A stretch of 64,000 nucleotides of DNA from Dimorphilus gyrociliatus. Its lineage: Eukaryota > Animalia > Annelida. Each line of letters opens with the position of its first letter. Position 1 is the stretch's first letter. Below, in pieces: positions 158-40,348 of this stretch. Position numbers and translations under genes: made by a program. The notes beneath the pieces are model-generated. The model ran no database searches. It was not told where the DNA came from and worked only from the letters and a program-made list of their open reading frames with translations. The stretch is from the NCBI GenBank assembly GCA_904063045.1, contig CAJFCJ010000013.1, positions 1,036,156 to 1,100,155 of the forward strand, written 5' to 3'.

Positions 158-277
158 AAGAATACGGCACCCAGTGTTCCCAGGCGGTCTCCCATCCAAG
201 TACTGACTGGGCCGTACGTCATTTAACTTCGGTGATCGGACGAGAACCGGTGCTTGTAACGTCGTATGGCCGTATAC
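158..277 (-). rRNA. 5S rRNA, canonical type
   Basis: Reverse complement reads GTATACGGCC...GATCACCGAAGTTAA...GTACTTGGATGGGAGACCGCCTGGGAACACTGGGTGCCGTATTC followed by a T-run. Metazoan 5S sequence, closing helix I and intact box A/C. Confidence 0.97.
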
Positions 278-1116: not shown

Positions 1117-1236
1117 AAGAATACGGCACCCAGTGTTCCCAGGCGGTCTCCCATCCAAGTACTGACTGGGCCGTACGTCATTTAACTTCGGTGATCGGAC
1201 GAGAACCGGTGCTTGTAACGTCGTATGGCCGTATAC
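1117..1236 (-). rRNA. 5S rRNA, canonical type
   Basis: 118-nt core identical to 158-277, followed by a T-run terminator. Confidence 0.97.
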
Positions 1237-1943: not shown

Positions 1944-2063
1944 GTATACGGCCATACGACGTTACAAGCACCGGTTCTCGTCCGATCACCGAAGTTAAAT
2001 GACGTACGGCCCAGTTAGTACTTGGATGGGAGACCGCCTGGGAACACTGGGTGCCGTATTCTT
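1944..2063 (+). rRNA. 5S rRNA, canonical type (C73U)
   Basis: Full 118-nt core with one substitution (cccagttagtac), T-run downstream. Confidence 0.96.
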
Positions 2064-3380
2064 TTTCTTTTTTTTTCTGTCTTGATATGAAACGGTCTTT
2101 TATGTTCTTTTGAGTATTTTAGCGAACTTGATACTTTTTTAGGGATATGAAGAAAAAATGTTAAGATATAGGTGTTGTATAAACATTTGTTGCCGGATTG
2201 TTTTTCTTTTTTATATTTCCCAAATTCCTCAGATGAACATTTTCAGTTTGGCGGAAAAAGAGGCGGTTTCTATGTGATCGCCAAATTTGACTTATGTATC
2301 GTCTAATTAATTTTCGAATGAAAAGCCTTCTTGGATCATTAGGCACTATATTCAGTTTCTAATTGTTGTGTAATTGAAATTCACAATTAATAGCAAATGA
2401 AAATGAGAGAATAGTTTTCTTTATAATGAAACGATTCACGTCTAACCTCTGAAGCTAACAGATTAAAATGTCGACTAATATTTAACTAGAGGGTGAGAAT
2501 ATGAACAAGAAAGTGTATTTAAATGTATGATGATGTACTTCAGAGAAGTTTGCCACAGAAATGAGATAAGGGAAGGAATCATTGGAGATAAATATTGCTA
2601 TACAAGAATTTAGGATAGGAGTAATTGTGCTTTTAAAACCTTCCATAAATATTGTTTTTTGTCTAACTTATGATGACTTTTCACGATATCACTGCTACTG
2701 CCATAAAACGCAACATATAAATAATTTCTTTTTTTTCATGTGCATATGTATATTGATTTCGGTACACGTTTGTCTAAAATATATAGGTAAACACATAGGT
2801 GTGTTTCTTTTTCTTGAAAGATATATCTGAGTGTATTATAGGAAATATTCTCTATTAATAATAAAATAAAGATTAAAGCAAGAACAGTTTATAAATTGCC
2901 ATATCTTCAAATAATAATTTCTTTTTCGAGGACTTTAAGTAATGGCATAATGATAGCAAATAGAAAATATTGAAAGACATGGATAATATTAATAAATATA
3001 TATAGTATGAGACGACTAATTGTAGCTACCCAAAAATATTAAAAAACAAGCTATTGATAACCTCTTGTCCAATCAAAAGAATAGGTAGGTAAACATCCAT
3101 GCCCGAACGAAGATGGTCTATGGAGAATAACAGCAGAAGAATTCGAAAAAACTGAATTTCATAAAAGATAAACAATTTCTTAATAGTTATTCCTAAAGAA
3201 TGTTTTTTCCTTCATATTAAGATTCATTACTATTAATACGAAGTAATTATTCATAAATATCTAAGCATGAAAAATATCAATCGTTTTAATATTTTTAAAG
3301 TCGCTACTAATCGACTGATGAGACTGTAGTATAAATTTATTTCCATATAAATAGTCCACAGTTAACTACTGTAGACTATT

Positions 3381-3436
3381 GTATACGGTCATACGACGTT
3401 ATATGCACCGATTCTCGTCTGATCACTGGGTGCCGC
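3381..3436 (+). pseudogene. 5S pseudogene with internal deletion
   Basis: 5S nt 1-46 joined to nt 105-112 at a CAC microhomology (gatcac|tgggtgccg), removing 58 nt that include box A, the IE and box C. Confidence 0.85.
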
Positions 3437-3956: not shown

Positions 3957-4076
3957 AAGAATACGGCACCCAGTGTTCCCAGGCGGTCTCCCATCCAAGT
4001 ACTGACTGGGCCGTACGTCATTTAACTTCGGTGATCGGACGAGAACCGGTGCTTGTAACGTCGTATGGCCGTATAC
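3957..4076 (-). rRNA. 5S rRNA, canonical type
   Basis: Identical core, T-run terminator. Confidence 0.97.
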
Positions 4077-4621: not shown

Positions 4622-4784
4622 AAATAATACGCATATTGTAGATCATAGGAATGCCATCTATAGCTTTTAAGTCATTTTTCTGTTTTTTGAGTATTTTAAC
4701 GAAGTCGATACTCTTTTAAGGATATGAAGAAAAAAATGGTAGATACAGGTGTTGTTTAAATAGCGCATAGTTATGTAGACTATT

Positions 4785-4904
4785 GTATACGGCCATACGA
4801 CGTTACAAGCACCGGTTCTCGTCCGATCACCGAAGTTAAATGACGTACGGCCCAGTCAGTACTTGGATGGGAGACCGCCTGGGAACACTGGGTGCCGTAT
4901 TCTT
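4785..4904 (+). rRNA. 5S rRNA, canonical type
   Basis: Identical core followed by TTTT. Confidence 0.97.
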
Positions 4905-5143
4905 TTACCTCTTTTTTTCCTTTCTCAGTCATTCATTCCCTGTTGTTGTCTTTAGTTTATATCCTCTAATTCATTTTTAGCACTCATTTTCATATTAACG
5001 ATAAAAATGTGACAGAATTAATAAAGTCTACGAAAAATCAGCAAAGTTTGCGAAAATCATTGCGAAAAGATTACAAACATGAATGAGAAGATCTGCAACT
5101 TTTCGAATATTCTAAAAATAAAAGGAATGTAAAAGAAGATAAA

Positions 5144-5263
5144 AAGAATACGGCACCCAGTGTTCCCAGAAAGTCTCCTACTCAAGTACTGACTGGGCTG
5201 TACATCATTTAACTTCGGTGATCGGACGAGAACCGGTGCTTGTAATGTCAGATGGCCGTATAC
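5144..5263 (-). rRNA. 5S rRNA, variant type (type B)
   Basis: Full length, 11 substitutions versus canonical, 8 of which form four compensatory pairs (U14-A65, A18-U60, A82-U94, A85-U92). Distinct 5' flank, T-run present. Confidence 0.85.
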
Positions 5264-5606
5264 AATGAGGTAGCCTATTTTAAGGTTCATGTATCAAATA
5301 TGGCATTTAGTTAAATCCAATAGATAGAAACGGTTGACAATATCGATAATTTATCAATGTGCATTAACTACCATTAAACAAGGGGAACATGACTTCAATA
5401 ATGCAGCAAATTTAAATGAGATTGAGAGATTGAATGGAGAATGTTGAAATCGTTATCTGTGAAGTCAATTTTGCCTTTTTTCTTTTCTTTTTCTTTTTAC
5501 TTTCTGAATTGACTATTACCATAAGCTATTAGGGGAGAATATCCTTGAAACGTCATCATTTATCAATTATACTGCATTTAAATAGCGCATAGTTATGTAG
5601 ACTGTT

Positions 5607-5617
5607 GTATACGGCCA
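5607..5617 (+). pseudogene. 5S 5' stub (11 nt) behind an intact upstream element
   Basis: aatagcgcatagttatgtagactgtt|gtatacggcca, then an abrupt switch to unrelated spacer sequence. Confidence 0.7.
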
Positions 5618-5787
5618 AGTAGTTGGTAGAATTGCAAGTAGTTAAAATTTAAAAAAAATACTTTTATACGTCAGTGATAGAAAGGACTCTCTGCCATTAT
5701 TTGTTGGAGTCAATGTTCTGTAAGAATATGAAGAAAAAAGGTTAAATATAGCTGTTGTATAAATAGCGCAAATCTAAGTAGACTGTT

Positions 5788-5907
5788 GTATACGGCCATA
5801 CGACGTTACAAGCACCGGTTCTCGTCCGATCACCGAAGTTAAATGACGTACGGCCCAGTCAGTATTTGATTAGGAGACTTTCTGGGAACACTGGGTGCCG
5901 TATTCTT
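5788..5907 (+). rRNA. 5S rRNA, mosaic: canonical 5' part and flank with variant-type helix IV
   Basis: Positions 1-77 canonical; 3' part reads GTATTTGATTAGGAGACTTTCTGGG, sharing A82, A85, U92, U93 and U94 with type B. Confidence 0.75.
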
Positions 5908-6622
5908 TTATCCCTTAATTTTTCTTTTCTTGTATTTACCGTTTCGTCTTTAGTAAAGCATCTTCTTAAATTTTTAGGTGACCTACATTGTTAATTTGAA
6001 AGAATTGAGAAAATAGAAAACACAACCGGAGATTGTATATATAATCGCTTCCACTGCTAACCAGGGGTTCGTTATTTATTCTCGCTTTTTCTCTAGCGTT
6101 ATAGTAGCCTGCGCTGTTTTCGTGTGAGTTGAGAAAATAAAGCGTTATCAACCGTGACAGAACACCTAAATTATAATTTTGCTTATTATTTTCTTTTGTT
6201 ATATTAAATACTGGTGTGGCTTGACATAAGACGACTTGGATGATCCAACGAAAGGGATCTCTTGCAACCTTTCTGCCCTAAGCACTATCTTTTCAGTCTT
6301 TTCTCTTAATTTTGTGATTTATAAGTTGAGCATAATTGTGCTTAGGAATAGTAGGTTAACTAATATGTTATATCCTATAAATTTTTGACTTGAAACAAAT
6401 GCTTATTGCTATATATTTAGCGAAAATCGTAAGATCATGTCTTTGAGATCGCTTCGGTAATTTCGAAGAGGAGCGTTATTAAGTTTTATCGAGATGGTCC
6501 AATTATGCGGCACTAGATGCCGTATTCTTTGACTTTTTTTCTTCCTCTTTTGAATATTATTTTAAGATTTCTAGCATTTATCATATACAGTATATGCTTC
6601 TTTGAAATGGTACTTTTTAATG

Positions 6623-6829
6623 GGGTCGACAGAAAACGTCCACAAATGAGAAATTTCAAGACAAAAATTTGGATTGAGAAATGGTTAGGAAGAAGAAGAG
6701 AGCAACTGATTTGTAATTAGGAGGGTCTCCTCTAAGGGTTAGGGGTAATGGAAAAGGTTAGGTACAGCTAAGGGCTGGGTTAGGGTTAGGGTAAAAGCAC
6801 CAATTTGTGGACGTTTTCTGTCGCATCCC
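6623..6829. mobile_element. MITE copy C (independent insertion, divergent subfamily)
   Basis: Perfect 9-bp TSD TTTTTAATG at 6614-6622 and 6830-6838; perfect 21-bp inverted repeat CGACAGAAAACGTCCACAAAT; internal gggctgggttagggttagggtaaaa shared with copy B. Confidence 0.88.
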
Positions 6830-8145
6830 TTTTTAATGTATCTGAACTATGATCTTTCTATGATCTAATATTTCGGTAACAAAATTTTTCTTACGTAATT
6901 CGCTTTGTGTATCATTTTAAAACTAATAAATATTATCTTTCTCGTTTTGTACTTTGAGTGTGTAAATAAACTAATTAAAAAATATATTTAACTTAAAAGG
7001 CAAATTTCGTCCCAAACTCGGCCATTTTGTTTACAATCCCTCATGCATTTCCACTTCCGTCCTTTTTCCGCCATGCTTTTTGGAAACGCATCTGGGGAGA
7101 AAAAGCGCTTAATAAGCAAATTTTGGCTTCTTAAACTTCTTCCGTGTTCTGAAACGAAGCCTGATGATTGCTTGGATGATGGTGAGTTTGTATTCTTTCT
7201 AAAAAGTCATATAAATATTACTTTTGAGAAAATATATTAGAATATTTAGAATCAAAATCACGTGTTGATGGAGATTCGGAATTACAGCAATTTTCATGTT
7301 AAATTCCTTTTATAGGTTAATTAGCACAACTTCTTGTTGTCGGTATGCAGGTTTTTAATTTTTTAATACAAATTAGTTGTAATTTGGCAGATTTATCCCT
7401 TGAATGATAAGAAATCATTTTGAGCGATAATATGTCCAAAGCTTTGCCTTATCCATTCTTAAAACTTTTTTTAATTAACAAGATTTTGTTCACCTTTAGA
7501 TAAAAGTTGAAACAACTAATAATAAGGAGTTTCGACAAAACAAATAGCAAATTGGGGATGAGAGAGCAAAATGAGTTAGTATTTGCCTTAGAGAATACTG
7601 AACGACAAACATTAAAATCTGAACTGTCAGATTCAAAATGGCTTTTCCAACATGGAACTAGTACACTATGGATCACTAATTATATCATTTGATTAATTAT
7701 GTATCAATTCAAGCTGTTTCAGATTTTGCAGTACATTACATGTACAACTTAGAAATGGTTTTTCTTTTTTGTTAACATTTCACAAATAAAAGATCATTTT
7801 TATGACTAATACTGCAAAGAAATATGAATTATTTTTGCGCGGAAAATCGTGAAGCAACAAATATCTGAAAAGTAATTTTTTAAAGTCAGCAAAATTTAAA
7901 TGAACAGGTTATTAACAAACACTGAAATTTCACAATATCGAAAACTCGATTAAAATAAATAATACATGCTACTAATCCTCTATATTATCATGCACAGATA
8001 AGTACACTTTTGTATTTCATATCCGAGAAGGAAGTTCCTACAATAAAACTGCGCGACAATACACAAACAGCTTACGAATATTACAAGCGAAAAGTGGAAA
8101 TGTTTCTCAAGAAGAATAAAGACCCTAGTGATAGACATACGAAAA

Positions 8146-8263
8146 TAAAACGTTACCAAATGCTTCCAGACACTCTTCTATTCAAGAAATTATAAGACCA
8201 AGTTACAGTTAACCTCGGTGAGCAGACGAAAACCGGTTCTTACAACATTGTATGACCATATAC
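8146..8263 (-). pseudogene. Decayed 5S copy
   Basis: ttaacctcggtgagcagacgaaaaccggttcttacaacattgtatgaccatatac aligns co-linearly with the 5S reverse complement, with many substitutions. Confidence 0.75.
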
Positions 8264-8771
8264 ACTAACTTCAATTCTTTTTTCATCAAAAACTCTAGGA
8301 AAATTTCGTTGAAAAGTCAAAACGAACATTTGAAATTCAAATAGAAGTAATAACAGACCGGGAAGAAAGAGAAAGAGGAAAAAGTTTACACAAAACCTAC
8401 TTCTAGAATCATTCTTTCTACAGCGATTTAACTGCAATACAAAAATAAAAATCAATTGAATTCAATAGTATCAATATTAACAAAGATGTTAGATAACGTA
8501 ACTTAAAAAGATATCTTACGAAAGATTATCACCTTCTAGACTGCTGTAAATCGAGCGATAATCCAGAGCTGTAGCAGTGAGCAAATTATAATTGTCTCTC
8601 AAAGAAGCTTTGGAAGAAATTCAGGTGATCAGAGCCGAAGCGAGAACTTTAATGTCTGTTTTTACCGTTCTATAAATTTTTAATCATTTTATAAATGAAA
8701 GTTTGATATTTTTTAAAAATTTTTAACAAAGGTACACGTGGTATAAATAGCGCAAATTTAAGTAGACTATT

Positions 8772-8891
8772 GTATACGGCCATACGACGTTACAAGCACC
8801 GGTTCTCGTCCGATCACCGAAGTTAAATGACGTACGGCCCAGTCAGTACTTGGATGGGAGACCGCCTGGGAACACTGGGTGCCGTATTCTT
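8772..8891 (+). rRNA. 5S rRNA, canonical type
   Basis: Identical core, T-run. Confidence 0.97.
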
Positions 8892-9258
8892 TTTCATTTT
8901 TTTCTTCTACTTTCTTTCCGCCATCTGTCTTTTTCCTGTGGTGCCTTATTCTTTTTTCTCTTTTTTCCTTTCTCAGTCATTCATTCCCTGTTGTTGTCTT
9001 TAGTTTTTATCCTCTAATTCATTTTTAGTACTCATATTCATATTGACGATAAAGATGTGACAGAATTAATAAAGTCAACGAAAAATCAGCAAAGTTTGCG
9101 AAAATCATTGCGAAAAGATTACAAACACGAATGAGAAGATCTGCAACTTTTCGAATATTCGAAGATTGAAAGTAAATTCAATCTTTAATAATCAAAAATA
9201 AAATGAAAATAACGTTGAACTTTAGTTGAAAAATAAACGGAATATAAAAGAAGATAAA

Positions 9259-9378
9259 AAGAATACGGCACCCAGTGTTCCCAGAAAGTCTCCTACTCAA
9301 GTACTGACTGGGCTGTACGTCATTTAACTTCGGTGATCGGACGAGAACCGGTGTTTGTAACGTCAGATGGCCGTATAC
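9259..9378 (-). rRNA. 5S rRNA, variant type (type B)
   Basis: Shares C13, U14-A65, A82, G83, A85, U92, U93, U94 and the type-B 5' flank with 5144-5263. Retains canonical G18-C60 and has a private G25A. Confidence 0.85.
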
Positions 9379-9587
9379 AATAAGGTAGCCTATGTTAAGG
9401 TTCATGTATCAAATATAGCATTAAGTCCAATAGACACAAAATCTCTTCTTTCAATTCATGTCAAAAAATGTTAATGACATGGTTTTCTCGTTGAATCATA
9501 AAGAAAACATTCGAAGACCTCTCGTAAATATTTCATTTTATAGGAAAGGAAGAAAAATTGAGAGAAAGAGAAGAAAAAAAAGATAAA

Positions 9588-9707
9588 AAGAATACGGCAC
9601 CCAGTGTTCCCAGGCGGTCTCCCATCCAAGTACTGACTGGGCCGTACGTCATTTAACTTCGGTGATCGGACGAGAACCGGTGCTTGTAACGTCGTATGGC
9701 CGTATAC
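9588..9707 (-). rRNA. 5S rRNA, canonical type
   Basis: Identical core, T-run. Confidence 0.97.
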
Positions 9708-10186: not shown

Positions 10187-10306
10187 GTATACGGCCATAC
10201 GACGTTACAAGCACCGGTTCTCGTCCGATCACCGAAGTTAAATGACGTACGGCCCAGTCAGTACTTGGATGGGAGACCGCCTGGGAACACTGGGTGCCGT
10301 ATTCTT
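10187..10306 (+). rRNA. 5S rRNA, canonical type
   Basis: Identical core, T-run. Confidence 0.97.
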
Positions 10307-11496: not shown

Positions 11497-11616
11497 AAGA
11501 ATACGGCACCCAGTGTTCCCAGGCGGTCTCCCATCCAAGTACTGACTGGGCCGTACGTCATTTAACTTCGGTGATCGGACGAGAACCGGTGCTTGTAACG
11601 TCGTATGGCCGTATAC
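11497..11616 (-). rRNA. 5S rRNA, canonical type
   Basis: Identical core, T-run; last intact copy of the cluster. Confidence 0.97.
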
Positions 11617-14368: not shown

Positions 14369-14454
14369 TTCTCATCCGGTCACTGAAGTTATGTGATGTA
14401 CGGCGCAGTCAGTACATGGATAGGATTTTTTTGGGAACACTGGGTGCCGTATTC
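14369..14454 (+). pseudogene. 5'-deleted 5S pseudogene
   Basis: ttctcatccggtcactgaagttatgtgatgtacggcgcagtcagtacatggatagg...gggaacactgggtgccgtattctttt; upstream element aatagcgcaaagttaag still present at 14341. Confidence 0.85.
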
Positions 14455-17240
14455 TTTTTATCTCCTTTTTTTTTCTTCTGGCATCGTCAAAATTTCTTTT
14501 TAGTCAGGGAAATTTTCGAGTATTCTAATGTTTAAAATTAGGAGATTTTTTCCAGTAATAATACTCGTTACAGGCATTACGCGAAGGATCTTCCCGACTG
14601 TGGGGCCATCTATAGGAATTAATAATAAAATATTAATATTTACAGAGATAGACGCCTTAGAACGCCGAAAATTCGAATAAGTAATTAGAGAAAGCTATTT
14701 AGATGAGAAAAAAAGAAGAAAAAATAACTAAAAGACAAAGAGAGTCCCAGGCGTTCCCTTGGCGTACTCGATCTTTGTCTTTGTGACAAGGAGATGAGCT
14801 AAAGTATAAGTTCGATTTAAAATCGTTTTTCCAACATGAAACTAATATACTACAATGACCAAGTCACAAAGGTGCTTGATGATTTCGACTATTTAAGCAG
14901 GGACTTGAGTACTTTCCATGTATAGACATTTCTTTTGTATCTTTGAATACAAAACGAAACATATGGAAAAAAAAGACGATAAATTGAATGGGAGAATAGG
15001 GGAAAATAAGATAAAGGGGAGTCTAATCAAATGAGTAAGGGATTCGTAAACAGCTAATTAGCGTTATCTTTAAGAAGTATTAATATTTTTTAATTGACTA
15101 ATTGAATACATTATTCTATTTTTTTTATATCTTAAAGATAGGGAAGAAGAGAGGAAAAATCGAAAAAATAATATATTTATCTTCTACTTAAAACATAGAA
15201 CATAGAGTTCTCTGAGAAATTATGATATTTATTGTAGATTTCAGATTATACAGAAATTGAATACGTTAACCACGGGCTGCATTTGGATTTTGAGTCGTCC
15301 TATCTAATCTTTGAATCACTGCAGTAGACATATTTAAAGTTTGTTCAAGCAGGATTTCAATTCTTGGCATCATAGTTTCGAATACAGGTTCAAATTCGGT
15401 TAATGTTTCGGATATACGCTGAAGGACTTCACCTATTCCTTCCAAGGATTTCTCCAAATTTCCGATATCGTGTTCAGCCATTATCAAAAGTCTGTGAGTG
15501 ACGACGCAGCAATAATTTTATACTGTTCAAGTATTCGACTATTTCGAGATTGAGTCCTATTCATTTTGATATTAATAAAAAACATATTAAATCGACAATT
15601 AAAGGGAGTACATGCTAGTCTGTATGTGGGTGGGTGAATGTTAAGGGAATATCTCCAATAATAACTTGCTCTATTAATCATATCAAATATATTATCGACA
15701 GAATAATATTCATCGAATTAATCAGCATCTTCTAATTTATTTCATTATCTAATACATTTTTAATTAATATTCTACATCTATTTATAACTCTTCTTAATTA
15801 TCAAAAATATTGATTAGGATAGAATTATCTTATAGGTTTCTTAATCGATGACGAAGCAAGACTCATTCTCCGTGTTGTAAATGTTAAAGATGAAAGAGTG
15901 AATTCCATTGGGTAATTTTTTTAACCGAATATCGAGAACAATGATCCAGCTAGTTGAAAGTATCAAAGCTACGGGATAAGCGTCAATAGTTGAGCGTTTT
16001 GGATATTGCATTTGACCAATCTATTGAGCTATAATGTTATTTTATTAAAGCTAAATAGAGAGTATAACTTTGACTATTAGAGAGGATTGATCTAAATTTA
16101 TAGTAAGGTACAACTAACAATTAACCACTCATTGAAATACCCAGAATACTCATCGATAAATATAATTGTTCAAATTCTCAGACAGTTAGGTGAGGAGAAG
16201 AGAAATTGATTGACCTAGAAAAGATTGTTAATATTATTTGAGAAGGCTAAAAATATTCTGCGAGTTTTTCAAACAAGGGAAGAAAATAACTAAGTTCTTA
16301 ATTTCACTTGGGGAAAAGCCGATTTATTATAATTCTAGATCGTTTACTATTCCACCCCCTCTAATGAACAGCTGACTTTGGAAAGTGCAGTTCCAGAAAT
16401 TGGTTAACCATAACAATTATCCTAAAGAATTCTTGCAATACTTTTGTCGTCTTAAGCGCAATCATATCTGAAAGTGTTGTTTCTTTCAATAAGCAATAAT
16501 AACATAATAAAAAAGGATGCTACAATACTCACCTCGTCTTACTAGACAAGTCTTCCGACACTGAACAATCACTATGATGGAAATCCTACGTATTGATTAA
16601 TTTGGAAAGGTTCCCCCCACCCCAGCCCTACCCATTTCCTCCCGATTCGCTTGTAAATCAACTGATAGACTTGTCTATCTATTATAAAATATCTAATATT
16701 AGTATAATTAAGACAACTCACTTTCGGCTTATTCTTCGTGTATGAACTATATTTAAAAAAGAACTAATCGCTTTGTTGAAATCCAGATTAGTGGGCTTTT
16801 CTTTAATTAATATTAGAAATAATCCTACTTTCTCCCTACTTTGTAATAAACATCCAAGTGTTACAATGCGTCTCGTAAATAATCAATTTTCATTGTTTAT
16901 CAATGAATATCTTATTATGAATACGATTCCTATTCCTTAATTCTGTAGGGAATATTTGTAAATTTACTAAGAAAAGGTGAAAGTTATTAGTTTTTGATAA
17001 CGCAAGCCACTTTAATAGATAAATAGAATGCAAAAGACGTGATTTCTGTATGTCATACGGCGAGTAGAGAAATTTTAACTCGAATTTATTACTTTTTTTG
17101 TACAAAACTTGAAAACTTAATTGGAAAAATTTCAAAACTAATTCAAGTAAACAATTATTTTTTGGTGTAGGCATATGAATTGGGATTGTGGCTTGAGGCA
17201 GCAAGGCTCTGGGAATATCAAAATTTCAAGCGACCAACCG

Positions 17241-20380: not shown

Positions 20381-20960
20381 ACCTAGATTTCAGTAGAAAA
20401 GTCATAAACTTAAGTAGTTTAAGTCGATGATGATTTGAAAGGGAGAATACTATCTGCCATTTGCACAAAAAAGAAAGGTTCACCTCTCATCAGGAGAGCT
20501 AATTCGCTTAAAATTCGATCAAAATTTAAACAGAATGCCTGTATGAAAAGTTCTGAATGTATTCTTCTACTGTTTTTTTATTATCTTCATTGTCATTTTA
20601 GACGCAAGTTGTTCCATTTACTTATCGGTCTATCTTTACACTTCGTTTAACTCTTTCCTTGGATATTCGGAGGAAAAATTATGATTAAAAATGAGAGAGG
20701 CAGTCAGTCTTCCCAAGACTTTATCACTGAAATACTAATTCAGTCGTATTGCAGCTTATTTTGCCGATTGGGCGGGACAAAGTTTCTAAACGTTAAATGA
20801 CATTATACAGCATCTTTTCCTGTCAATCTTCCTCCAAAATGTAAATCATTTAGTTGATTAGCTGGAAAAACCGAAAATATTCATTTGAAATGATATTCTG
20901 AACAAAACGAAAATTGGATATTAAGAGAGAGATAAAGAAAGAGAAAGAAAGAGGAAAAAA

Positions 20961-21081
20961 GAATACGGTACCCAGTGTCCTCAGAAAGTCTCCTACTCAA
21001 GTGCTGACTGGGCTGTACGTCATGTAACTTTGGTGATCGGACGAGAACCGGTGCTTATACAAGCACCGTATGGCTGTAAAC
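20961..21081 (-). pseudogene. Type-B-like 5S pseudogene
   Basis: Near full length, carries the type-B helix IV (agaaagtctcctactc) and A65. The 5' region is disrupted by a small insertion and substitutions. Confidence 0.85.
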
Positions 21082-28142: not shown

Positions 28143-31100
28143 ATGGTTGATCTAGCAAGAGAGAGAGCCGAACTCGCTCTAATAAACGCTGTAAAAACTC
28201 CAGTCATATATGAACGATTCTTAAGAAAACTGCCATATCAATATGTGAAAGATATAGCGATTTCTGTAAGTTTTTTATACTTGAATTATGCATACTTAGC
28301 ATTTTACTTTATTTCATTGTAGATATTAAAAGAAAGCAAGATCAGCAATATTCTGACGGAAGATGACTTGAAATTTAAAATTGACGTAGGTTTATCTATA
28401 GTATTTTTTTTAGATAGCGTAGTGATTATAGTATTATCTATTTTTAGACATTTGAAGAAAAAGTTCAACTTTTACAGAAGATCATTGAAGCAGTTGGTGA
28501 GTTGTTTTTTAATAAAAAAAAAGAAATTGTAAAAAAATTGACTGAAAATTTCATATAATACTAATATATTCAAAGAAGGTAAAGGTATAGTTGATGAGAA
28601 GGATATCATTTCTGGAGTAAATCATCAGCGAACGTTAGATTTTTTACTACTACTGACTGGATTTGCTGTACGGAAGAGGGAAGGAGTCTCTACACGTAAA
28701 TTTAATGCTCTATTATCTATTTACAGTATATTATCTAATTATTTCTTTATTTATTTCTTATTTACAGAAAATTTCAAATCTTTTGTTGATGAAATAGAAG
28801 CAATGGGTTATCAAAGAGCCAGTCAAGTAAAGAAACAAGTACCCAAAACAGTTTTCCTTGGACCAGTGATGAAAAATGAAATATTTGATGCATATAATAT
28901 ATTTCCTCAAAACAGGATGCCTTTACAGAGTATTTTTAATCAAAGTTCAATGGTAAAGAGAACATAGTGAATCATTGACAAATTATACGTTTGCTTTTAT
29001 ACTTTAGAATCCTTTATGGCAAAACAGGGAACCCAATGAAATAAATGAGATATCTATCCTTGATATTAAAGATATAGATTTTTTAAACGACTACTTTTTT
29101 TGCTTAGCCAATGAAGTAGTACCTTCAATTAAAGAATACGAGACAGTAAGTTTTTATACTACTTCGCAATTCATTATTGAAAGCTTTTTTTTTTTAAATA
29201 TAACAGATAACGTGGAAACTTCGTAAAGTTTCGCTCCAAAATTGTCCGAATGTTACTGATTGGTCAGTATTTTGGATTAAAAAAGCAAATAATTCCATTA
29301 GGGTTTGTATACTGAAAATAGAACTAAAATAAAGAGCTAATTAAAATTAAGACAAAGTTTGGTATTTTTTTAGGATTGTAGTTTCAATGAATGCAATTCT
29401 TTGAGCTATTGGACATTTGAAACTTTTGAACAAGCCTCTCAGAGTTCAGTAATTATTGGAAAGTCTAAGAAAGGTGGAAAATCAAAAGTTACTGTTAATA
29501 AAGAACCTCCTGGAGAATGTATTTCCTTAACACGTGACTTTTCTCAAGAAGTTAAAGAAAAATTAAGACCTGTTAATCCCTATTTCAATCCTTATGCATC
29601 CAATGATCTAGATCTAGAAAAAGAATTGAAAACGGAACGCATAAGTTAGATTATTTAATGATAAAAAGTTTCTTTACTGAACTGTTCTTTATTTCAATAG
29701 GTATCAGAAAAGAACCTCAATTTCGTTGTCGGTTTTTAGATGATAAAAAAGCAGTTATAATCCATTTTCAAAGCCTATATAAAGACAATAAAGGATCAAA
29801 TGATAGATTATTCGGAAGAATTAATTTCGAATCTTTAATAGCAAACAAAAAAATACAATATTGTAAAAATGTTTTTAACTATTGGAAAATAAACAACTGG
29901 AAATTTTACGATTGTTATGAGGTATGAATAATTATTATCTTATCTTTATCTTTTATTATAATTTTCATGCCTATCCCCCAAAAAATAGGATTATATACAA
30001 TTTATATCACTCAAACGATCACTTCTCGTCATTCCATTTAATTTAGTATGCGACGAAGAACATCTTTCCCTTTATTTGATAGATATAATTATTGGACTTT
30101 TACAAATGGTAAATCTTTTAATTGCCTATTTTTTTAAAATAATATTGACACTTATTCAATTAACTATTTTAATAGAACCTCAGTCCGGAAGCGCCACCTG
30201 TAATCATTTTTGTAGGATTTGGAACTAAAATTGACGAAATCATAGCTACATATTCTTTAGTTTCTATAATGCAGTCTAAAATAGATGAATTTAAGAATAC
30301 TATTAAAGAAAAGTCAAGGTATTTGAAATGATATTCTCGTAGTATAACAATTAATGCAGAAAATTATTTCCTATTTATTGCAGTATCCAAGAACTTTCAA
30401 CGCTTGAATTCAGCGATCAAAACAATATACATAATTTAATGGCTTTAACTCAATTATTATATGAATTAAAGTCAAATATAGAAATTGATAATTCACTTAT
30501 AACTTTTATTAACCTGGATATAGAGAAAAAAGATCAAGTTAATATACTTCTTCTTTAAATTTCAGCTTGTTAAAAGATCTATTAACAATATCAAATTTCT
30601 CTTATACCAGGATTTAGCTAACTATATGAATGTAGCATTTAAAAGAGTTGTAGATTTAAATCCACAGTTTAAGGTGATTAATTGAGTTTTTGTAGTTTAA
30701 AATTAGAGAATATTGTATTTATATATTTTAACAATTTGCAGTACACAGAAGATACTTTAGATGACTTTATCGCGTCAATTAATAAGAAAGTTAAAAAGAG
30801 AGAGGGTTTTTTAAGTATAACAGAGATTATGGAGGCAAACTCTCGTTCAAGTATGGTCTTTTTTATGTTGTTCCAAATTTTTTATTGTTAAACCTATCCT
30901 CTCTTCAGATCTATTTCATGTCAATAAAGCAGATGAGGAACAACATAAAGTAGTGGAAATATGCTCATTTCCATATTTTAAAGTTTTGGATTTATGTCAT
31001 ATATTAGTGCGTTATTGAATTGTGAAGAGAATGTCAATTTATTCAACTGCTACTTTTCATTCTAGGGTCATATAATATTTTTGAAGAGTTTTTTAGACGA

Positions 31101-34100
31101 ACAATGGTACGTAGCTAGTCCACAATGGTTTGCAAATTATCTACAAAACTTATATTCTATATCGGAAATTTGTGGTGATCATGTAAAAATTGATCAGTTT
31201 TTTCTTCGAAAATCAATGAAAGTGTGTCAGAAAGCGGATTGGTATAGTTCAAAAAATGCTCCAGGAAAGGTTAGTAATGATAATATATAGTTGTTACTTT
31301 GAAAATAAAAACGTATTTTTTAAAAGATATTTAGTTATGTGGAATTTCTTTTCCGGACGGCTGTAGGATTAAAACTGCCAAATTGTGGTTTATTACTTCC
31401 TCTTCAATTGACATCCGCTCCAAAGGAAATGTTCAAGTTGTTAGAGGTATGTAATAAGTCTTTTCATTATTATTTTTAAAAGGATTTTTAGTGTTTATGC
31501 GAAAGTGTTATTGGCCTAAAAATGTAAAGAAATCCATTATGATTAAATTTAGTAACACCCGTTGAAATAGAATCCATTACGGTACTAAATATAGTAATCC
31601 CTAAAATCACGTTAGTGTGGCGAAGTGGTCAAATCACTCCATTCTTTTAAAACCCGCAGACTTATTTAAAAACAAAAAATGTCTAATAAGCGTCGTCGAT
31701 CCTTTTCAATTGAAGAGCGTCATAAAATTATTTCAAGTATTGAGGGAAAAGATAATCATCGAGAGGAAGTTATGGAAATCTTTGAACTATCTAAAAGCAC
31801 TATCTCCGGTATTTGGAGAGATCGACAAAAGATAAGAGAAGCCTTTTATAATGAGAAAATTAACAAAACATCTAGGAAGATTAGAGGAGTTCTTCATGAC
31901 GACGTTGAAAAATGTTTAGTTGCCTTCGTTCAAGATTCCAAAACTTGTCAAATTCCTATAACAGACGAAATGCTGCGTTCGAAGGCGGCAGAATTTTCTC
32001 AAAAGCTAGGTATAACAAACTTTAAGCCTTATAGCGGCTGGGTTGACGGATTTAAAGTTCGAAATCAGCTAAAGAAACCTAAACTTACTAAGCTTGACGA
32101 TAAAGAGGATGAAAACACAGCAAACGCTACAAATTTTCGCGCGCTACCAAAAGCTAACTTGTCTTCCAAAGAAGATAAATACAAAATACTAAGAGCACTT
32201 TTGTCCAGCTAGAACAACTTTCAGCCATCTATAACTGTCCAATTGTTATTGTTTAATTTATTTCATTTATAATACACTATTTATTCCGTTTAATAAAAGA
32301 ATAGAAAATCTGACAAAAAGAATAGAACGTTTCCCTAAAATCGCCTCCATTTTGAATTTTTTTCATAATACTTTTTTTCGTTATAAAGGAAAGAGAAGAT
32401 ATCGTAGAAGGTTCATCAGTCTACACGTTTAAATCAGCATTAAATCATTGGGTTCATTGGCGGATTATTTATCACATTTATTTTCTTTTACACAAAGAAA
32501 ATCATAATACGACAATTGCCGCCGTTTATTACGATTTAATTATTATTCACGATGGACCTGTGGAAGCTTATATTTGTTTTGATGAGAAAGGTAAAGGAAT
32601 TAATTTAAAAGCAACACTATTTTCTATATTGGAAAATCTACTTTTACAGAGTCTAAAACTGTCAAGATATGTTGTAGGACTATCAAAAATCAAAATTCCC
32701 CATCTTTATTAGCAAGTCTTTTAAAGGAAATTTCTACTGCTGTTGAATATTCACTGAAAATGTTCTCTGTTTACTTCTCTGTGAGAATTAACAAAAATAA
32801 CCTATAATTTAAATTATCTTGTCTTCTAAACCAGAATACGTTGATTACTCCTTGGGGACATAAATTTATGATAAGAAAAGATAAGACAAAGTCTAGTTTA
32901 TTTATTGATGAGCATTTGAAGTTTTGTACGTTTTGTCAAATAATTTTTTGATTAACATCTATTAATTGTCGTCTTTTATTACAGTTAATAATTATTGTAT
33001 ATCTTACAATAATATATTACCTTCAACAACTAATCAGAATATAGCTAGCAGGCAACATTTTGTTTGGAAAATGCATAAAGAGTTATGTCCAACTTTCAAA
33101 ACTGAAATTCTGACAGAGAGTGATCAGAGTACAATTCGTTCTGGTGATAGTTTTGATAATTCTACATTATATTGGAAAATGGATGTGATAAATTTCTATT
33201 CAATTACAATTAGTAATTGTTTTGGTATCAAATTTAGAGTGAAGTAAGTGAATATATTCAAATATACTTCTCAGTTCAACTTTTCTTATCCTCTTTCGTT
33301 TCAACAGGTCAGCCGAGTATGTATATAACTAAATACGAAATTCTCCTATTAATTCGTTTTGTTTCATTTCATAAGTACGGGTTTCTCTCTAACTGTTGAT
33401 TCGGTTGAGGGAAAAATTAAAATTCTTATGAATGGGATAACGAAGAAATCGTTCGATTTTAGCCCAAAAGGTTCGACTTTTCTTACATTGAAGTTACTAC
33501 CTATTTTCGAAGGAAATAGTATTTTAGCAATGTATAAGGTTGAATTTTTCGCTAATGATATATTTTCAACAATTTAAAATTATTTATTCCCTTTAGCATT
33601 CTCTAATCACATTGAATTTATTAATGGACAATATCCTATTGGTCAGCCTTACAGTACCAAACAATCAATATAAACTTGAATTTTTAAAGATACCTAATTC
33701 AAAAACAATTGATTTTACATATGCTCCAGTAAAACATATTCAGTGCACTTTTTCGCATATTTCTTAAGATTCTTTTGCAATTTTTTTTATCAGAGAAAAA
33801 AATTTGAATATTCCTACAATTCTATAGCTATTGGTCAAAAACTAGGTATAAAACATAAAGAATGCGTTAATAAGCACTATGGAACTATTGCAACCATTGG
33901 TATGTATGTATTTTTAATTTAAATCTTATTAAACCTTCCACTGTCATAGAAAACATTTTACCTGAAAAGAAATTAATTCTGATAAATGTTGATGGCTCTA
34001 AATATCGGCCGAAATGGAAAAGTTATCGCCAACTCAAAGATGTTTTGGCAATTTATTTAAAACTTAGCGTTAATAGTTATATTTTTGGTTTGATTTCTTT

Positions 34101-37100
34101 TTGTTTTTATCTGAATATTTGAATAAATTTAGGTGTTTTTACAGCAAAGACGTCAAAACGGATAAGATTTCCTGATTATTTAAGCTTTGTCGGGGGTCAA
34201 TCGGTTCCCTACGATTGGATTGAGCATGCATTACGCGTATCAGAAGACGAAATGTGTTCAATTATACCACGAGAAAAAGGAATTCATTTGGCAGATATTG
34301 CTCAATCATCCGGTAGTTCTTGATTTATTTTGCTGTCGTCTTTTTAATTCTTTGTTGAGCAGGTTTCCTGTATAGAGAATGGGCAAAAGTGATTCCCCAA
34401 AGTATCGAAGCGTTTTCAAAACTTGAAGGATTCAACTCACCTAGAGGGATAATTTTTCCGCGAGAGCTTAAAGAAGATTCAGTAATTTACTTGAACGAAC
34501 TCGTTCAGTTTGATAAAATGACTGCCTATATTGTTTGCTTTACATCTGTGCGCCCATCTTTATTTTCTGGAAAATATGATCATATAATAAGAAAGTCTGC
34601 CAAAACTGTTTCAAAAGTTTCTTGTCTTGAGGAAGTTGAAAAATGTATGATTCACATTCTGACACTATGGTTATATTATAAAGACAGCAAGGTAAAAGAG
34701 TAAAATAAAATGCGTTTATAAGTACTACTGATCATATCATTTAGGCTACAGAAGATATCGAATCAAGCCAGCTTGGGTTCTACCTTTCACTGTTGCTAAA
34801 TAAACATGATATAAATAATGTTATAAATCATTTTAAAAGTGACAAGCAAGAAGCTAAGACCGCAAAAGCTGGTGGTGGTGAATCTCAGGAAGAGTTCCTC
34901 TACAAAATAACAACACCCCTGCAAAAAGTAAAAAATAAATATAAACTTTTCTCCAAGAATTATGCATAAAATTTCTTCTATAGGTTTTTAAAGATGTTTT
35001 TACTACCGAAAAGACGTTAGGCGTAATGAATAATCCAAGTACTGGAATTTTTGAATGCTCCTTTCACGTCGATGATGGAAATAATTTCGAAGTTAAAAAT
35101 GAAGAACACATACAAGCAATATCTAATGATATCATATATTACATATCAAATTATAATCAAACAGCAACAATCTGCAATTAGTAATTTTCTCAATAATTAA
35201 ATAGAATATATCGTTTTCATCAAATTTTTTTTTTCAGTTTCAAATATTTAAATGAATACACTATCCCTGACGGCGATGGAAATGAAGAAAATTCTTATGA
35301 AAAATTAGGGAACCTCTTCAGGCTATCTCTTATAGATATAAAAAATGCCAAATCGTCTGTCATTCTTACATATTTGGATAGAATATCAACTACAGTCAGA
35401 TATTTACACATATCAAATGGTCCAATAAAAACAATTCCTCATACAATTGGAACATGTACACTATTAACAGAACTAGATCTTTCGAATCTTGCAATAACCG
35501 ACTTACCAATGGAAATGTCTAATTTATTGCAGCTTCGTGATCTAACTATTACTGGAAATGTGTTTAGTAATTTTCCAAAAGTTATCAAAGAACTTCCTAG
35601 CCTAGTCGTTTTGAGATTTAGCGCAATGAATTTTAAACCGTTTGACTTAAAGATAACAGAAAATGCGATAGTTACGTTTGACGAATTGTTAGATTTATAT
35701 CATAAGGAGTATTCTCATTTAATTTCCATTGGACTAGACGAAGAAAACATGGTCAATCTTTTTCAACAGGCTGATATAAACAAAAATAAAATGCTAAGCG
35801 ATTCCAGTGAAAAGCAAGAATTTCATGCAGGTCTATTTAAGAAATTACCTAGACTATCCTCTTGGAATATCTTGAAAAGTATTCATAAACAAGCATATAA
35901 TACTATATCCTTCCTAGAGTTAAGATTTCAAGGTTTTCGTGTTCTGGATGATGGTATTCAATACTTGGTAAACTTAGAGTGGTTGGATATATCTCATAAT
36001 TTAATGCTAGAGGAGATAAGCAGTAAAATCTCAGATCTTCCTTTATCTTTTTTAGCCATTGACGCTTGTCCATCTTTGAAAACACCTCCAAAAGAGATAA
36101 TTGACAAGGGTCTAACAGCCATCATGAGCTATATGAGGGCATTAAATAGAGGCTCTGTATCATGTAGAAGAACAAAATTAATGCTAGTGGGTCTTGGAGG
36201 TGCTGGAAAAACAAGCTTAGTGTCTGGACTAACAGAGAGTAATCAACAGGAAAGTGAGAAATTAGTTAAAAGTGCACAAGTTACAGATGGAATTTCGATT
36301 AAGAAATGGGTTATTCAGTCCATAGAGTATTCAATATGGGATTTTGCCGGACAAACAGTTTATTACAATACTCATCAGTTCTTCTTATCAAATAGAGCCG
36401 TTTATTTTTTAGTCTGGAATGTAAGATTAGGACACGAGCATGCTGGTCTGAAATTCTGGCTAAGCTCTATAGAATGTCATGCTCCTAAAGCTCCAATTTT
36501 CATTGTAGGAACTCATATTGATCAGGTATAACTGAATAAGTATATTAGTTAGCCTTTTTTACAGCATTATCAAAATTTAACATAGGTTGAAAAATCGGAA
36601 CTACCTGCTTTGGAATACCAAGAGCGATATTCGCAAATTAAAGGATTTTACTACGTCTCTTCTTTAAGTCGCAAGGTATGTTAAGAATAATGGATCAATA
36701 AATAATTTAGAATTTTTTGTATAAATAAATTTATAGGGTATAAATGAATTAATCAATGGTTTGGTGGAGATAACTTTGAACGAAAAATATATGAATGAGA
36801 AAATACCAATGATCTGGCTAGATTTCGAAAAACAAATGTTCGAGTAAGTAAATATATAAATATCGTATATTCTTATATTCTTAGAAAATGAAAATTGCGT
36901 ATGTTTACATTCTTGAAGTTGTCAAGAAACTCTGATAAAAAATTGTTCCTTTCTGGTTTACAGATAAATATATAACTTGTTTTTTATAATAGAGCCGGCA
37001 GCAATTCTAATCTAATTTCAATAGAAGACGCCTTGAAACTTGCTGAAAGTAGTGGTATATTTAATAAGGCCGAGGTTATTATTTATAGCTATGTTTACTG

Positions 37101-40100
37101 TTTCTTGTTCATTTGATATTCTCTTTCTCAATCACACACACACATACACTCTCTTTTTCTTCCTTACAGTTTTATCAAGCTGTTGAACTTCTTCATGAAT
37201 TAGGGTCTCTTTTATATTTTCAAAACGAATTCTTAAGGAAGAAAATTGTTATAAATCCACAATGGATTGTGGACGTAATGGCTTGTGTTGTTTCAATTCA
37301 AGTAAATGCAATAAAGGTTGGTATCAAATCAATTAAAAATCATAGAATTTCATTGTCATTTTTTTTTACTTTTAATTTATTGTCTCTAAAAAAAGGACGG
37401 AAAATTAATGCATAAAGACTTGTCAAAAATTTGGCCTTCAGAGTCATATGCTGCTCATCTTCACGAATGGTTGCTACGCCTTACTGAAGAATTTGATTTA
37501 ACGTTTTGTTTAAAAACTGAAAAGGCTAGCCTGGTCCCCTGCCTTCTTCCTGAACTCGAACCAAAAGTAATAAATATTTCGCCAAGCATTTTATGATTAA
37601 TTCATTACAATCATTAATACGTACTATCTTTAATAGCATCCTTGGGAAGATGAACCTTTAAAGAGTGGAGAAATTCAGACAAAAATGCAATATAACTTTG
37701 ATTATCTGCCCTCAGGATTATTTAATAGAGCACAAGTTAGACTCTATCAGTATAGTGACGAGTCTCTTATCTGGAAAAATGGATCTTTTTTAAGAAAAAA
37801 TAGTCATAGAGGTCTTTTAAAGAAAATAAGGTTTAACTTTTAATTATTTCTATTGCTATTCTAAATAATTTTTTTTGCCTTTTAGCTCAACAACGGTTCT
37901 TATCGAAGTGAGAGGGTTAAAGCCGGATAATGTTCTGTTTCTTGTCCACGAAGTTTTCGAAACTTTAATTGCTGAATTTTTTCATGGAGTTCGTTACGAT
38001 TTTACATTACCCTGCCCTGAATGCATTCACCAATGTATTTCAAATCCTACCATGATACCGTCATCACGTATCAGAAAAGCATTACAGTTAAAAATCCCTT
38101 TTCTACAATGTAATGATAACTTCCATACAGTGTCTATAACTCAACTTCAAAGTATGTTATTGTTGTTTTGTTATTAAGAAAAAATTACTTACTTCCTTGT
38201 TATATCTTTAGATATGCTACCTCCTGATGGTAACGAAGAATTCGATATACATTTGCAAAACGCCGTTAGAGAATTGAAGAAAATTCGATCAGGACTAGTA
38301 ACGGACATTGTAATGTTATACTGTTTGTCCGATGATCCTCCGAAAGGATCGGAGAATAGTATTGTCTCTGCGACAAGAATTAAAAATGAATTGGAAAAAG
38401 CGGGGTTTTCCATGTAAGATTTATAATTTTTAAATTAACTTTCCCAACTAATGGTATTTTTTAAATCCAAAATATTTTAGAAAATTGTATAATGATTCTT
38501 GCGAGAAATATATTGAAGAAGCAATATCTTCATTGAAAACTACTCAAGTGGTACTGACTTTAATGACGGACGATTTTATCAAGAATTTAACCTGTAAAAA
38601 TTTATTCATTTATGCAAAAAAGAATTTATCCAAACCAAATCAATTAATACTAATTAAGAAGAGTGATAAATGGAAACAAAATACTGATATTGGGATGCTG
38701 TGCTCAGATGATGTAATACTATCTATACTGATATATATACTGTATATAGTTTATAGAATACTAATAAATCGTTTCTTTTATATTATCAGATATACATCAA
38801 TATGCAAAATGTGAATAATTTTAGCACAAAGATGAATGATTTGAAAAAGTCACTGAATCTCGAGAATAAAATGGCTAAAGAATGGCCACCGTGTTTCATA
38901 AGTTATTGCTGGAGCAACTCTTTATCAGCCATAAAGAAAGGGACAAAAATGAACGAATCAGCACTTGGTAAGACTGATCCTAGACAATTGAAAGATAAAC
39001 TCGAACAAGCCGGAATAAAATGCTGGATGGATGTTGAACAAGTAGGCCGAGGTGGTTTGTTTCAAGACATTGCGGAAGGCTTAAGAAAAGCTAGGATCGT
39101 TGTTGCTTGCGTATCAGATGAGTATGTTTCCTCTAAAAATTGTCAGATGGAGTTTCGCTTTGCAGCTATTTCGCTAAGATTACCAATTATTCTTGCTGTT
39201 GTTGGAACCGGTAAGAATTGGATCAAATCTGAAATTGGTATGATATCTCTGCCGTATTCGAGAGTCGATCTTCAGAAAAGAGATGAGGATATTGTAGAAG
39301 TTATTGATCTTGTAAAAGAATATCTTAAAACAGAAAAATTAGATGAAAATAAGAAAACAAATTCAAAAACTCAAAAAGAAGCTAATCATGAAGAGTTTAC
39401 GGAACTCTTAGAGTTGGCTGAAAGAAAGCTATTGAGACAATTAATAATTTTGCAGGATCTATCAAGAGGGTCAAATTTTCCTCATATTCCAATATTAGAT
39501 TATGCAACACTCGAATCGAAACAATATCGTTTCAATTTTCTCTGTGAACATGATGAAGTAAGTGCTATTCAATTCAAGGCACACACATTCTAATATTCAT
39601 TTTTATCTACTATATTATCATCTAGGGTTGGCATCTACCTGCCGATAGTAAAAGTATTCAATGGAATATTGAACCTGAGAGCATGACAGCCGAAAATTAT
39701 ATTAAACAATGGTCTCCTTATTTGGTCAGAATTTACGCTCTTCTCCAGCACACTTCCATTCCCTTACTAGTTTTTAAAAGCAAAGAAGGTGCTAGTTTTA
39801 TCGAACAGTTACAGTCAAACTTAGTTAAGAAAAATGAAGAGAAAAATTTAACGATAAGAGACAGTTATGTGTCTATGATTGAATTAATAGCTAAGATATG
39901 GGATCGCCAATATAATAGCACCTCATCCAACGATCTATCAAAATGCCACGTAAGCAGTGGAAAAACTATCTGGTTATGCAATTATCACCAGAAAGAACCT
40001 CGAGTTACAATTCTTCAACCAGATGATGTCAATATCAGTATCCTTCCCGCAGTGGACAACGTAGAACTACTCGAAAAAGTTAAAAGAGACAACGGAGATG

Positions 40101-40348
40101 AAATTTTTAGGAATGCACACTCTGAACGGGCAGAAGATGGTTTATCCACTTTAAGTTTCTATAGTGATTTATCGGTTGTTGATAGTGAATTTTCAGACGT
40201 TACTATCAAAACAAATAAATCTCACAAGGAAGGAGAAACTTCACAAAATAATTCAAACAAAGCGTCACAGAAGAACAAGGAGGAAACTGTTACTGATCTC
40301 ATTTCTAAAGGAGGGAGAACGAAGAGTAGAGCTTGTGTAATTGTTTAA
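28143..40348 (+). CDS. Large multi-exon ROCO-family gene: N-terminal LRR / degenerate Roc-COR / beta-sandwich-like region, then LRR-Roc-COR-TIR-TIR-CaaX. May be two genes
   Basis: ATG at 28143 and a chain of short GT-AG introns with compatible phases at the junctions I checked (31.3-34.7 kb). The 5' half has Roc/COR-like peptides (NWKFYDCYE, APPVIIFVGFGTKID, YVASPQWFANYL). Not every junction was verified. Confidence 0.6.
31679..32212 (+). CDS. CENP-B/Tigger-type double HTH DNA-binding protein (no DDE domain), nested in an intron
   Basis: KRRRSFSIEERHKII...LSKSTISGIWRDRQKI (psq-like HTH) and DDVEKCL...IPITDEMLRSKAAEF...F..YSGWVDGFKVR (Tc5/CENP-B HTH). Confidence 0.88.
   Translation: MSNKRRRSFSIEERHKIISSIEGKDNHREEVMEIFELSKSTISGIWRDRQKIREAFYNEKINKTSRKIRGVLHDDVEKCLVAFVQDSKTCQIPITDEMLRSKAAEFSQKLGITNFKPYSGWVDGFKVRNQLKKPKLTKLDDKEDENTANATNFRALPKANLSSKEDKYKILRALLSS
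35374..40348 (+). CDS. LRR-Roc-COR-TIR-TIR ROCO protein (well-supported 3' part)
   Basis: LRRs (LTELDLSNLAITDLP, LEWLDISHN), P-loop GLGGAGKT, WDFAGQ, VGTHID, COR INPQWIV, TIR CFISYCWS...CQMEF, and terminal CVIV*. Confidence 0.92.

Follow-up and report, generated by a model that had tools for sequence, protein, structure and literature searches.

The 64,000-nucleotide (nt) stretch of the annelid Dimorphilus gyrociliatus analysed here (hereafter the window; contig CAJFCJ010000013.1 of assembly GCA_904063045.1, positions 1,036,156 to 1,100,155 of the forward strand) carries in its first 12 kb a scrambled cluster of 5S ribosomal RNA (5S) genes on both strands, and two of these genes, at 5145-5263 and 9260-9378 and referred to as type B, differ from the canonical gene largely by changes that keep the helices paired. 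We consider it probable that type B is a minor, divergent 5S paralogue lineage, which was selected for the 5S fold, was spread by duplication and by recombination inside the gene, and is at most weakly expressed now. It is a birth-and-death variant, and a second 5S system is not demonstrated. A dual 5S system, as proposed in a first-pass annotation of this DNA, finds agreement in a lineage constrained on its fold, but type B forms no homogenised class of its own in the window, has a flank common to its copies through a duplication, and is represented by no contig of the runs that contain the canonical 5S.

Paired substitutions in the type-B genes

Compared with the canonical gene, the copy at 5145-5263 carries 11 differences (A13C, C14T, G18A, C60T, G65A, G82A, A83G, G85A, C92T, G93T and C94T) and the copy at 9260-9378 carries ten (A13C, C14T, G25A, G65A, G82A, A83G, G85A, C92T, G93T and C94T). 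In the former, four G-C pairs (14/65, 18/60, 82/94 and 85/92) have been turned into A-U pairs by compensated double swaps, and in the latter three, its 18/60 pair being canonical and its G25A converting a G.U into an A-U pair. The paired swaps had been reported in the first-pass annotation, and they are borne out by the alignment, the covariance model and the pair count. Both copies match the RF00001 model over its full length (model positions 1-120) and are directly followed by a TTTT terminator; the limits previously assigned to them, 5144-5263 and 9259-9378, locate the genes correctly but include one surplus T of the terminator. According to a pair check, all helices I-V can form in both copies, and in the covariance-model alignment the sole non-standard pair is U2.U117, which also occurs in the canonical gene. 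Helix IV retains its pairing potential on condition that the bulge is displaced from A83 to U84, as in the earlier suggestion that A83G and G93U could shift this bulge. A pair count, made on a structure that we named ourselves, gave four pairs changed on both sides against zero to two when the partners were slid, and every unpaired cell in this count stemmed from a relic.

Neutral simulations on the canonical gene were run with the observed spectrum of eight GC-to-AT transitions, one other transition and two transversions. Under a uniform GC-to-AT null, at least four compensated pairs were obtained with p=5e-6, and when CpG sites were weighted 100-fold the values were p=2e-4 for at least four pairs and p=0.018 for at least three. 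Since the CpG observed/expected ratio of the window is 1.02, the uniform null is the fitting one, and under either weighting (p=5e-6 to 2e-4) random decay is unlikely to give the paired swaps, as had been claimed. Swaps so far above the neutral expectation argue that the variant lineage was constrained on the 5S fold, and the pattern points to an evolution of type B under selection on the folded RNA. The three differences between the two copies, namely the two sites of the 18/60 swap and G25A, all keep pairing (neutral p about 0.02). Likewise, none of the six affected pairs is broken in the type-B lineage, against five of the seven affected by the private changes of a decayed relic at 20960-21081 (Fisher p=0.02), and type B thus lacks the pair-breaking substitutions and indels by which a pseudogene would be recognised. 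Predicted energies indicate that the helix II/III arm has kept its stability (-12.2 and -13.6 kcal/mol in type B, -13.4 kcal/mol in the canonical gene), owing to the additional C13-G66 pair that A13C yields, and that the helix IV hairpin has gone from -4.6 to -0.5 kcal/mol, a loss of about 4 kcal/mol.

The two full copies as products of one duplication

Each type-B gene lies in a block that also holds a canonical 5S gene in convergent orientation, the spacer between them and 48 nt of the type-B flank. The two type-B copies and their flank are the result of one segmental duplication, and the copies are not independent. Between the blocks, the canonical gene differs at none of 119 positions, the type-B gene at three of 119 and the flanks at 14 of 289 plus two indels; the comparison of none with three implies that type B escapes the homogenisation or the constraint acting on the canonical gene. 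The co-variation of 18 and 60 stressed in the first-pass annotation is present, but it rests on this one pair of sister copies, and a conversion tract from the canonical gene over positions 18-60 would give the same picture and explains it equally well. Whereas a dual system would be expected to show a multi-copy, homogenised class of its own, type B consists of two sisters with three differences, interleaved with canonical genes.

The 67-nt insertion of the second block relative to the first, at 9161-9228, includes an almost perfect palindrome (aagattgaaagtaaattcaatctt) and possibly represents a small hairpin element. On the minus strand, ATG-started open reading frames (ORFs) of 77 amino acids (5057-5290) and 75 amino acids (9178-9405) run sense through the type-B genes. 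The 77-residue ORF, the one of the two that was searched, had no word-sharing protein in a set of 5.8 billion proteins, and both ORFs are most likely spurious.

Upstream flank and box C

A 28-nt element, composed of TAAATAGCGCA, four variable bases and TAAGTAGACTATT, ends at -1 of every copy with a canonical flank, including the chimera described below, and was matched 11 times against zero expected, one match being an orphan at 5579-5606. Because it sits in otherwise different spacer families, this element probably acts, together with a TATA-like box at about -30, as the upstream promoter. It is absent upstream of both type-B copies, a loss that would be expected of a pseudogene; motif search and alignment agree here with the previous observation that these copies lack the TAAATAGCGCA element and share a different flank. 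Nevertheless, this flank is an ambiguous mark of a separate class, which it had been taken for. As both copies stem from one duplication, its sharing needs no functional explanation, and the variant helix IV is found behind canonical flanks too. In addition, the TATA-like TAAAATAG of the first flank is not conserved in its sister, where TAACATAG takes its place. The orphan element is followed by just about 11 nt of 5S (5579-5617) and represents a truncated gene start, which fits breakpoints inside 5S genes.

Within the gene, six of the approximately 17 positions of box C, the main TFIIIA site (PMC8789306), are changed in type B; no change falls in the intermediate element and at most one in box A. 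The residues affected include G82, G85, C92 and C94, all upper-case (highly conserved) in the RF00001 consensus, and type B is also changed at the consensus-conserved A13 of loop A.

A chimera and three relics with marks of the variant helix IV

The variant helix IV is also present in a third intact gene, which was overlooked in the first-pass annotation and is located at 5788-5906. Its 160 nt of upstream sequence are identical at 159 positions to those of the unit at 159-277 and its positions 1-77 are canonical, and these are joined to the helix IV changes C78T, G82A, A83T, G85A, C92T, G93T and C94T at 78-94 and to a different downstream flank; judged from this sequence, the copy is the product of a crossover inside the gene. 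The relic at 20960-21081 combines A65 and the full variant helix IV with canonical bases at 13/14 and with upstream and 5' parts that are canonical-like, bears 12 private substitutions and a 3-nt insertion, and looks like a crossover that split the 14/65 pair. An old relic at 8144-8263 has 82A, 85A, 92T and 94T, yet canonical A83 and G93. With 18 of its 65 G/C sites changed, the chance that all four marks would be hit is about 0.006, and the helix IV variant is therefore old. As the relic at 14369-14477 is marked as well, all three relics bear variant marks, and the earlier statement that they lack the paired pattern has to be given up. The variant helix IV is not a cleanly separate class, since it sits behind canonical promoters at 5788-5906 and 20960-21081.

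Expression evidence

Expression was assessed on assembled contigs from a run search (five runs), four of which were aligned to 4750-5950 at 95% likeness. The canonical 5S is covered by contigs of three RNA or RNA-like runs, namely metatranscriptome X1, run X2 and run X4, the last being a small-RNA library with adapter sequences at the loose contig ends, one contig ending exactly at 4903 and a word depth of 430-1780 over the canonical helix IV. The contigs of X1, X2 and X4 contain no type-B-specific 5' or 3' part and no helix IV of the chimera, although contigs cannot prove absence, and the sole contig depth over the type-B gene falls on the stretch identical to the canonical one (positions 19-59). 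The lack of type-B contigs is weak negative evidence on expression. Of the words sampled from 4750-5950, 38% occur in run X5, which has no contig over 4914-5304, a segment that includes the type-B gene; the organism label of X5 is unlike that of the other runs and its junctions differ from the window, and this coverage hole proves nothing. Two metagenome scans, one with the variant helix IV and one with the 5' half, returned no further type-B sequence, and one Logan contig of a relative (L003) contained no 5S.

In one contig of run X2, aligned at 4780-4908, a canonical 5S is linked head to tail with the 3' end of a second 5S across 207 intervening letters. The genome of that organism thus seems to contain, at another locus, an orderly tandem array of 5S genes with short spacers, in contrast to the scrambled cluster found here.

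Origin of type B and alternative explanations

From the sequence differences and their statistics, the duplication and the chimera, all of them directly observed, we infer a past function for type B. Its differences would have built up while selection held the 5S fold, which would mean that, during some of its past at least, the gene was transcribed and used as an RNA. Its spread within the cluster took two routes, segmental duplication, which gave the two full copies, and crossovers inside the gene. One crossover kept the local pairing, and its product at 5788-5906 is intact; another apparently separated the long-range 14/65 pair, and its product at 20960-21081 decayed afterwards. Today the full copies lie behind a flank without the canonical element and have a rewritten box C, and we infer that they are at most weakly transcribed. 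Some points weigh against this reading. Relative to the rate of the flanks, the type-B gene has three differences where 5.8 are expected, which is not significant (Poisson p about 0.17), so that present constraint on type B is neither demonstrated nor excluded. The study of type-B copies is confined to those of the window itself. Moreover, contigs drop rare variants and the stage and tissue of the runs are unspecified, so that a stage-restricted RNA could be missed.

Could type B instead be an active 5S class with its own promoter and a different regulation, for instance oocyte versus somatic as in Xenopus and zebrafish? The compensated helices, the intact length and terminator, the private changes of both copies, which keep the structure, and a flank different from the canonical one would all suit such a class, and a maternal RNA type is conceivable given the large oocytes and dwarf males of D. 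gyrociliatus. We regard it as rather unlikely, since runs that hold the canonical 5S, including the small-RNA library at its depth of 430-1780, yielded no type-B contigs, and since the common flank goes back to a single duplication and differs between the two copies in its TATA-like motif. Further arguments against it are the changes at six of about 17 box C positions, among them the conserved G82, G85, C92 and C94, the fall of the helix IV hairpin from -4.6 to -0.5 kcal/mol, and type-B copies that are few and not homogenised, unlike the many-copy clusters of zebrafish (PMC5340908). That type B is a working second 5S, in which compensated swaps have reshaped box C and helix IV and the canonical upstream element is replaced, is in our view unlikely. 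If true, it would be transcribed through a TFIIIA contact that is altered or of another kind, and would give rise to a variant ribosome, perhaps a maternal one. It would then be the first dual 5S system of this sort among annelids and would be without precedent in differing at the main TFIIIA site.

A neutral pseudogene lineage, in which the pairs arose by chance under AT bias or by hairpin-templated (quasi-palindrome) correction at the DNA level, would agree with the predominance of GC-to-AT transitions (eight among 11 changes) in a region of 32% GC, five of these eight lying in CpG dinucleotides that face each other in the helices. Variant marks in all three decayed relics, the missing canonical upstream element and a gene not significantly slower than its flanks point the same way. 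Decay of CpG sites as an explanation was rejected on the basis of the observed/expected ratio of 1.02, which gives no sign of CpG hypermutability here, together with the p-values that persist at 100-fold CpG weight (2e-4 for at least four pairs, 0.018 for at least three). Templated correction is feasible within a hairpin as short as helix IV, but it could scarcely reach across the roughly 50 nt between the helix II partners; the pair gained through A13C lies just where a G-C was weakened; and true neutral decay, as seen in the relic, breaks pairs. We therefore hold neutral origin to be quite unlikely. An assembly or sequencing artefact of a repetitive 5S cluster is highly improbable. It could draw on run X5, which lacks a contig over 4914-5304 while holding 38% of the sampled words, but that run differs in organism label and junctions. 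The two copies lie in different blocks with ten identical differences, three private ones and diverged flanks, three further sequences bear the same helix IV, and complementary transitions are not produced by sequencing errors.

Comparison with known 5S systems

The maternal and somatic 5S types of zebrafish are distinguished by 9 nt, which are confined to the 5' half and leave the TFIIIA-binding element untouched, and each is multi-copy in its own chromosomal cluster, with proven stage-specific RNA (PMC5340908); the NOR-5S of turtles has one box C substitution (PMC8789306). As in zebrafish, two 5S types about 8-9% apart (9 nt there, 10-11 here) are present in one genome, both are foldable and their flanks differ. 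In contrast, the TFIIIA site is unchanged or almost so in zebrafish and turtles, and six box C/helix IV positions are changed in type B; and whereas stage-specific RNA is proven for the known dual systems, type B consists of two sister copies amid canonical genes and is known from genes alone. The 5S genes of stingrays (PMC3123226) and barnacles (PMC3215682), which combine birth-and-death with concerted evolution, resemble the present cluster in their homogenised major class, minor variants, chimeras and relics. Type B differs from these variants by its four compensated pairs, which are direct evidence of fold selection, unlike pseudogene decay. Accordingly, it fits the birth-and-death picture, the less common feature being divergence under a demonstrable fold constraint.

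A literature search found no work on 5S variants in D. gyrociliatus. If type B is expressed, heterogeneous 5S and the tolerance of TFIIIA towards a rewritten box C could be studied in a compact model, a miniature annelid whose genome measures 74 Mb. Even if it is unexpressed, the locus displays 5S birth-and-death in unusual detail, with a fold-constrained variant, chimeras from intragenic crossovers and the decay of the one chimera in which a long-range pair was separated.

Layout of the cluster and other loci in the window

The covariance-model scan with RF00001 (gathering threshold 38 bits) detected 13 copies of 5S above the gathering score and one weak relic in the window (Table 1). The canonical class comprises nine genes, eight identical and one with a single change. 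An Rfam scan at E up to 1 gave no RNA family besides 5S in the window, and the NCBI record has no called gene between window positions 5266 and 15266. The segment 4300-4906 is a 608-nt inverted duplication of 1115-1720 (98.4% identity), with a canonical 5S and its spacer included, and indicates recent reshuffling of blocks within the cluster. At 3370-3426, a fragment with the first 50 nt or so of a 5S gene, bearing several changes, adjoins a canonical-like upstream remnant.

Table 1. 5S genes, relics and associated features, in window coordinates
Feature	Position	Strand	Evidence
Canonical 5S	159..277	-	RF00001
Canonical 5S	1118..1236	-	RF00001
Canonical 5S, single change C73T	1944..2062	+	RF00001, sequence comparison
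Canonical 5S	3958..4076	-	RF00001
Duplicated block 1: canonical 5S (+), spacer, type B 5S (-), B flank	4741..5311	.	blastn self-comparison, alignment
28-nt upstream element, example	4757..4784	+	motif search
Canonical 5S of block 1, identical to block 2 counterpart	4785..4903	+	RF00001 107.6 bits
Type B 5S copy 1, 119 nt	5145..5263	-	RF00001 98.5 bits
Type B upstream flank copy 1, without 28-nt element, TAAAATAG at -19 to -12	5264..5311	-	alignment
Intact chimera	5788..5906	+	RF00001 99.5 bits, alignment
Old relic, 39 differences	8144..8263	-	RF00001 30.8 bits
Duplicated block 2, paralogue of block 1, with 59-nt and 67-nt insertions	8730..9426	.	blastn, alignment
Canonical 5S of block 2	8772..8890	+	RF00001, sequence comparison
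Type B 5S copy 2, 119 nt	9260..9378	-	RF00001 99.7 bits
Type B upstream flank copy 2, 4 substitutions and 5-nt indel, TAACATAG replaces TAAAATAG	9379..9426	-	alignment
Canonical 5S	9589..9707	-	RF00001
Canonical 5S	10187..10305	+	RF00001
Canonical 5S	11498..11616	-	RF00001
5'-truncated relic with 85A, 92T, 93T, 94T	14369..14477	+	blastn, alignment
Decayed relic	20960..21081	-	RF00001 51.7 bits

Away from the cluster, a continuous innexin ORF of 398 amino acids at 47038-48234 is identical to DgyrCDS9505 except for 30 residues (193-222) that are spliced out in the latter. As this ORF aligns with the Pfam innexin profile from one end to the other, the annotated intron of DgyrCDS9505 looks like a mis-call. 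A further annotated protein, of 428 amino acids, maps to the window at 100% identity. The region 28143-40348 holds an LRR-Roc-COR (ROCO) gene, for which the public model has 1733 residues with a TIR domain; our domain scan of this region covered the single 385-residue ORF at 35374-36531.

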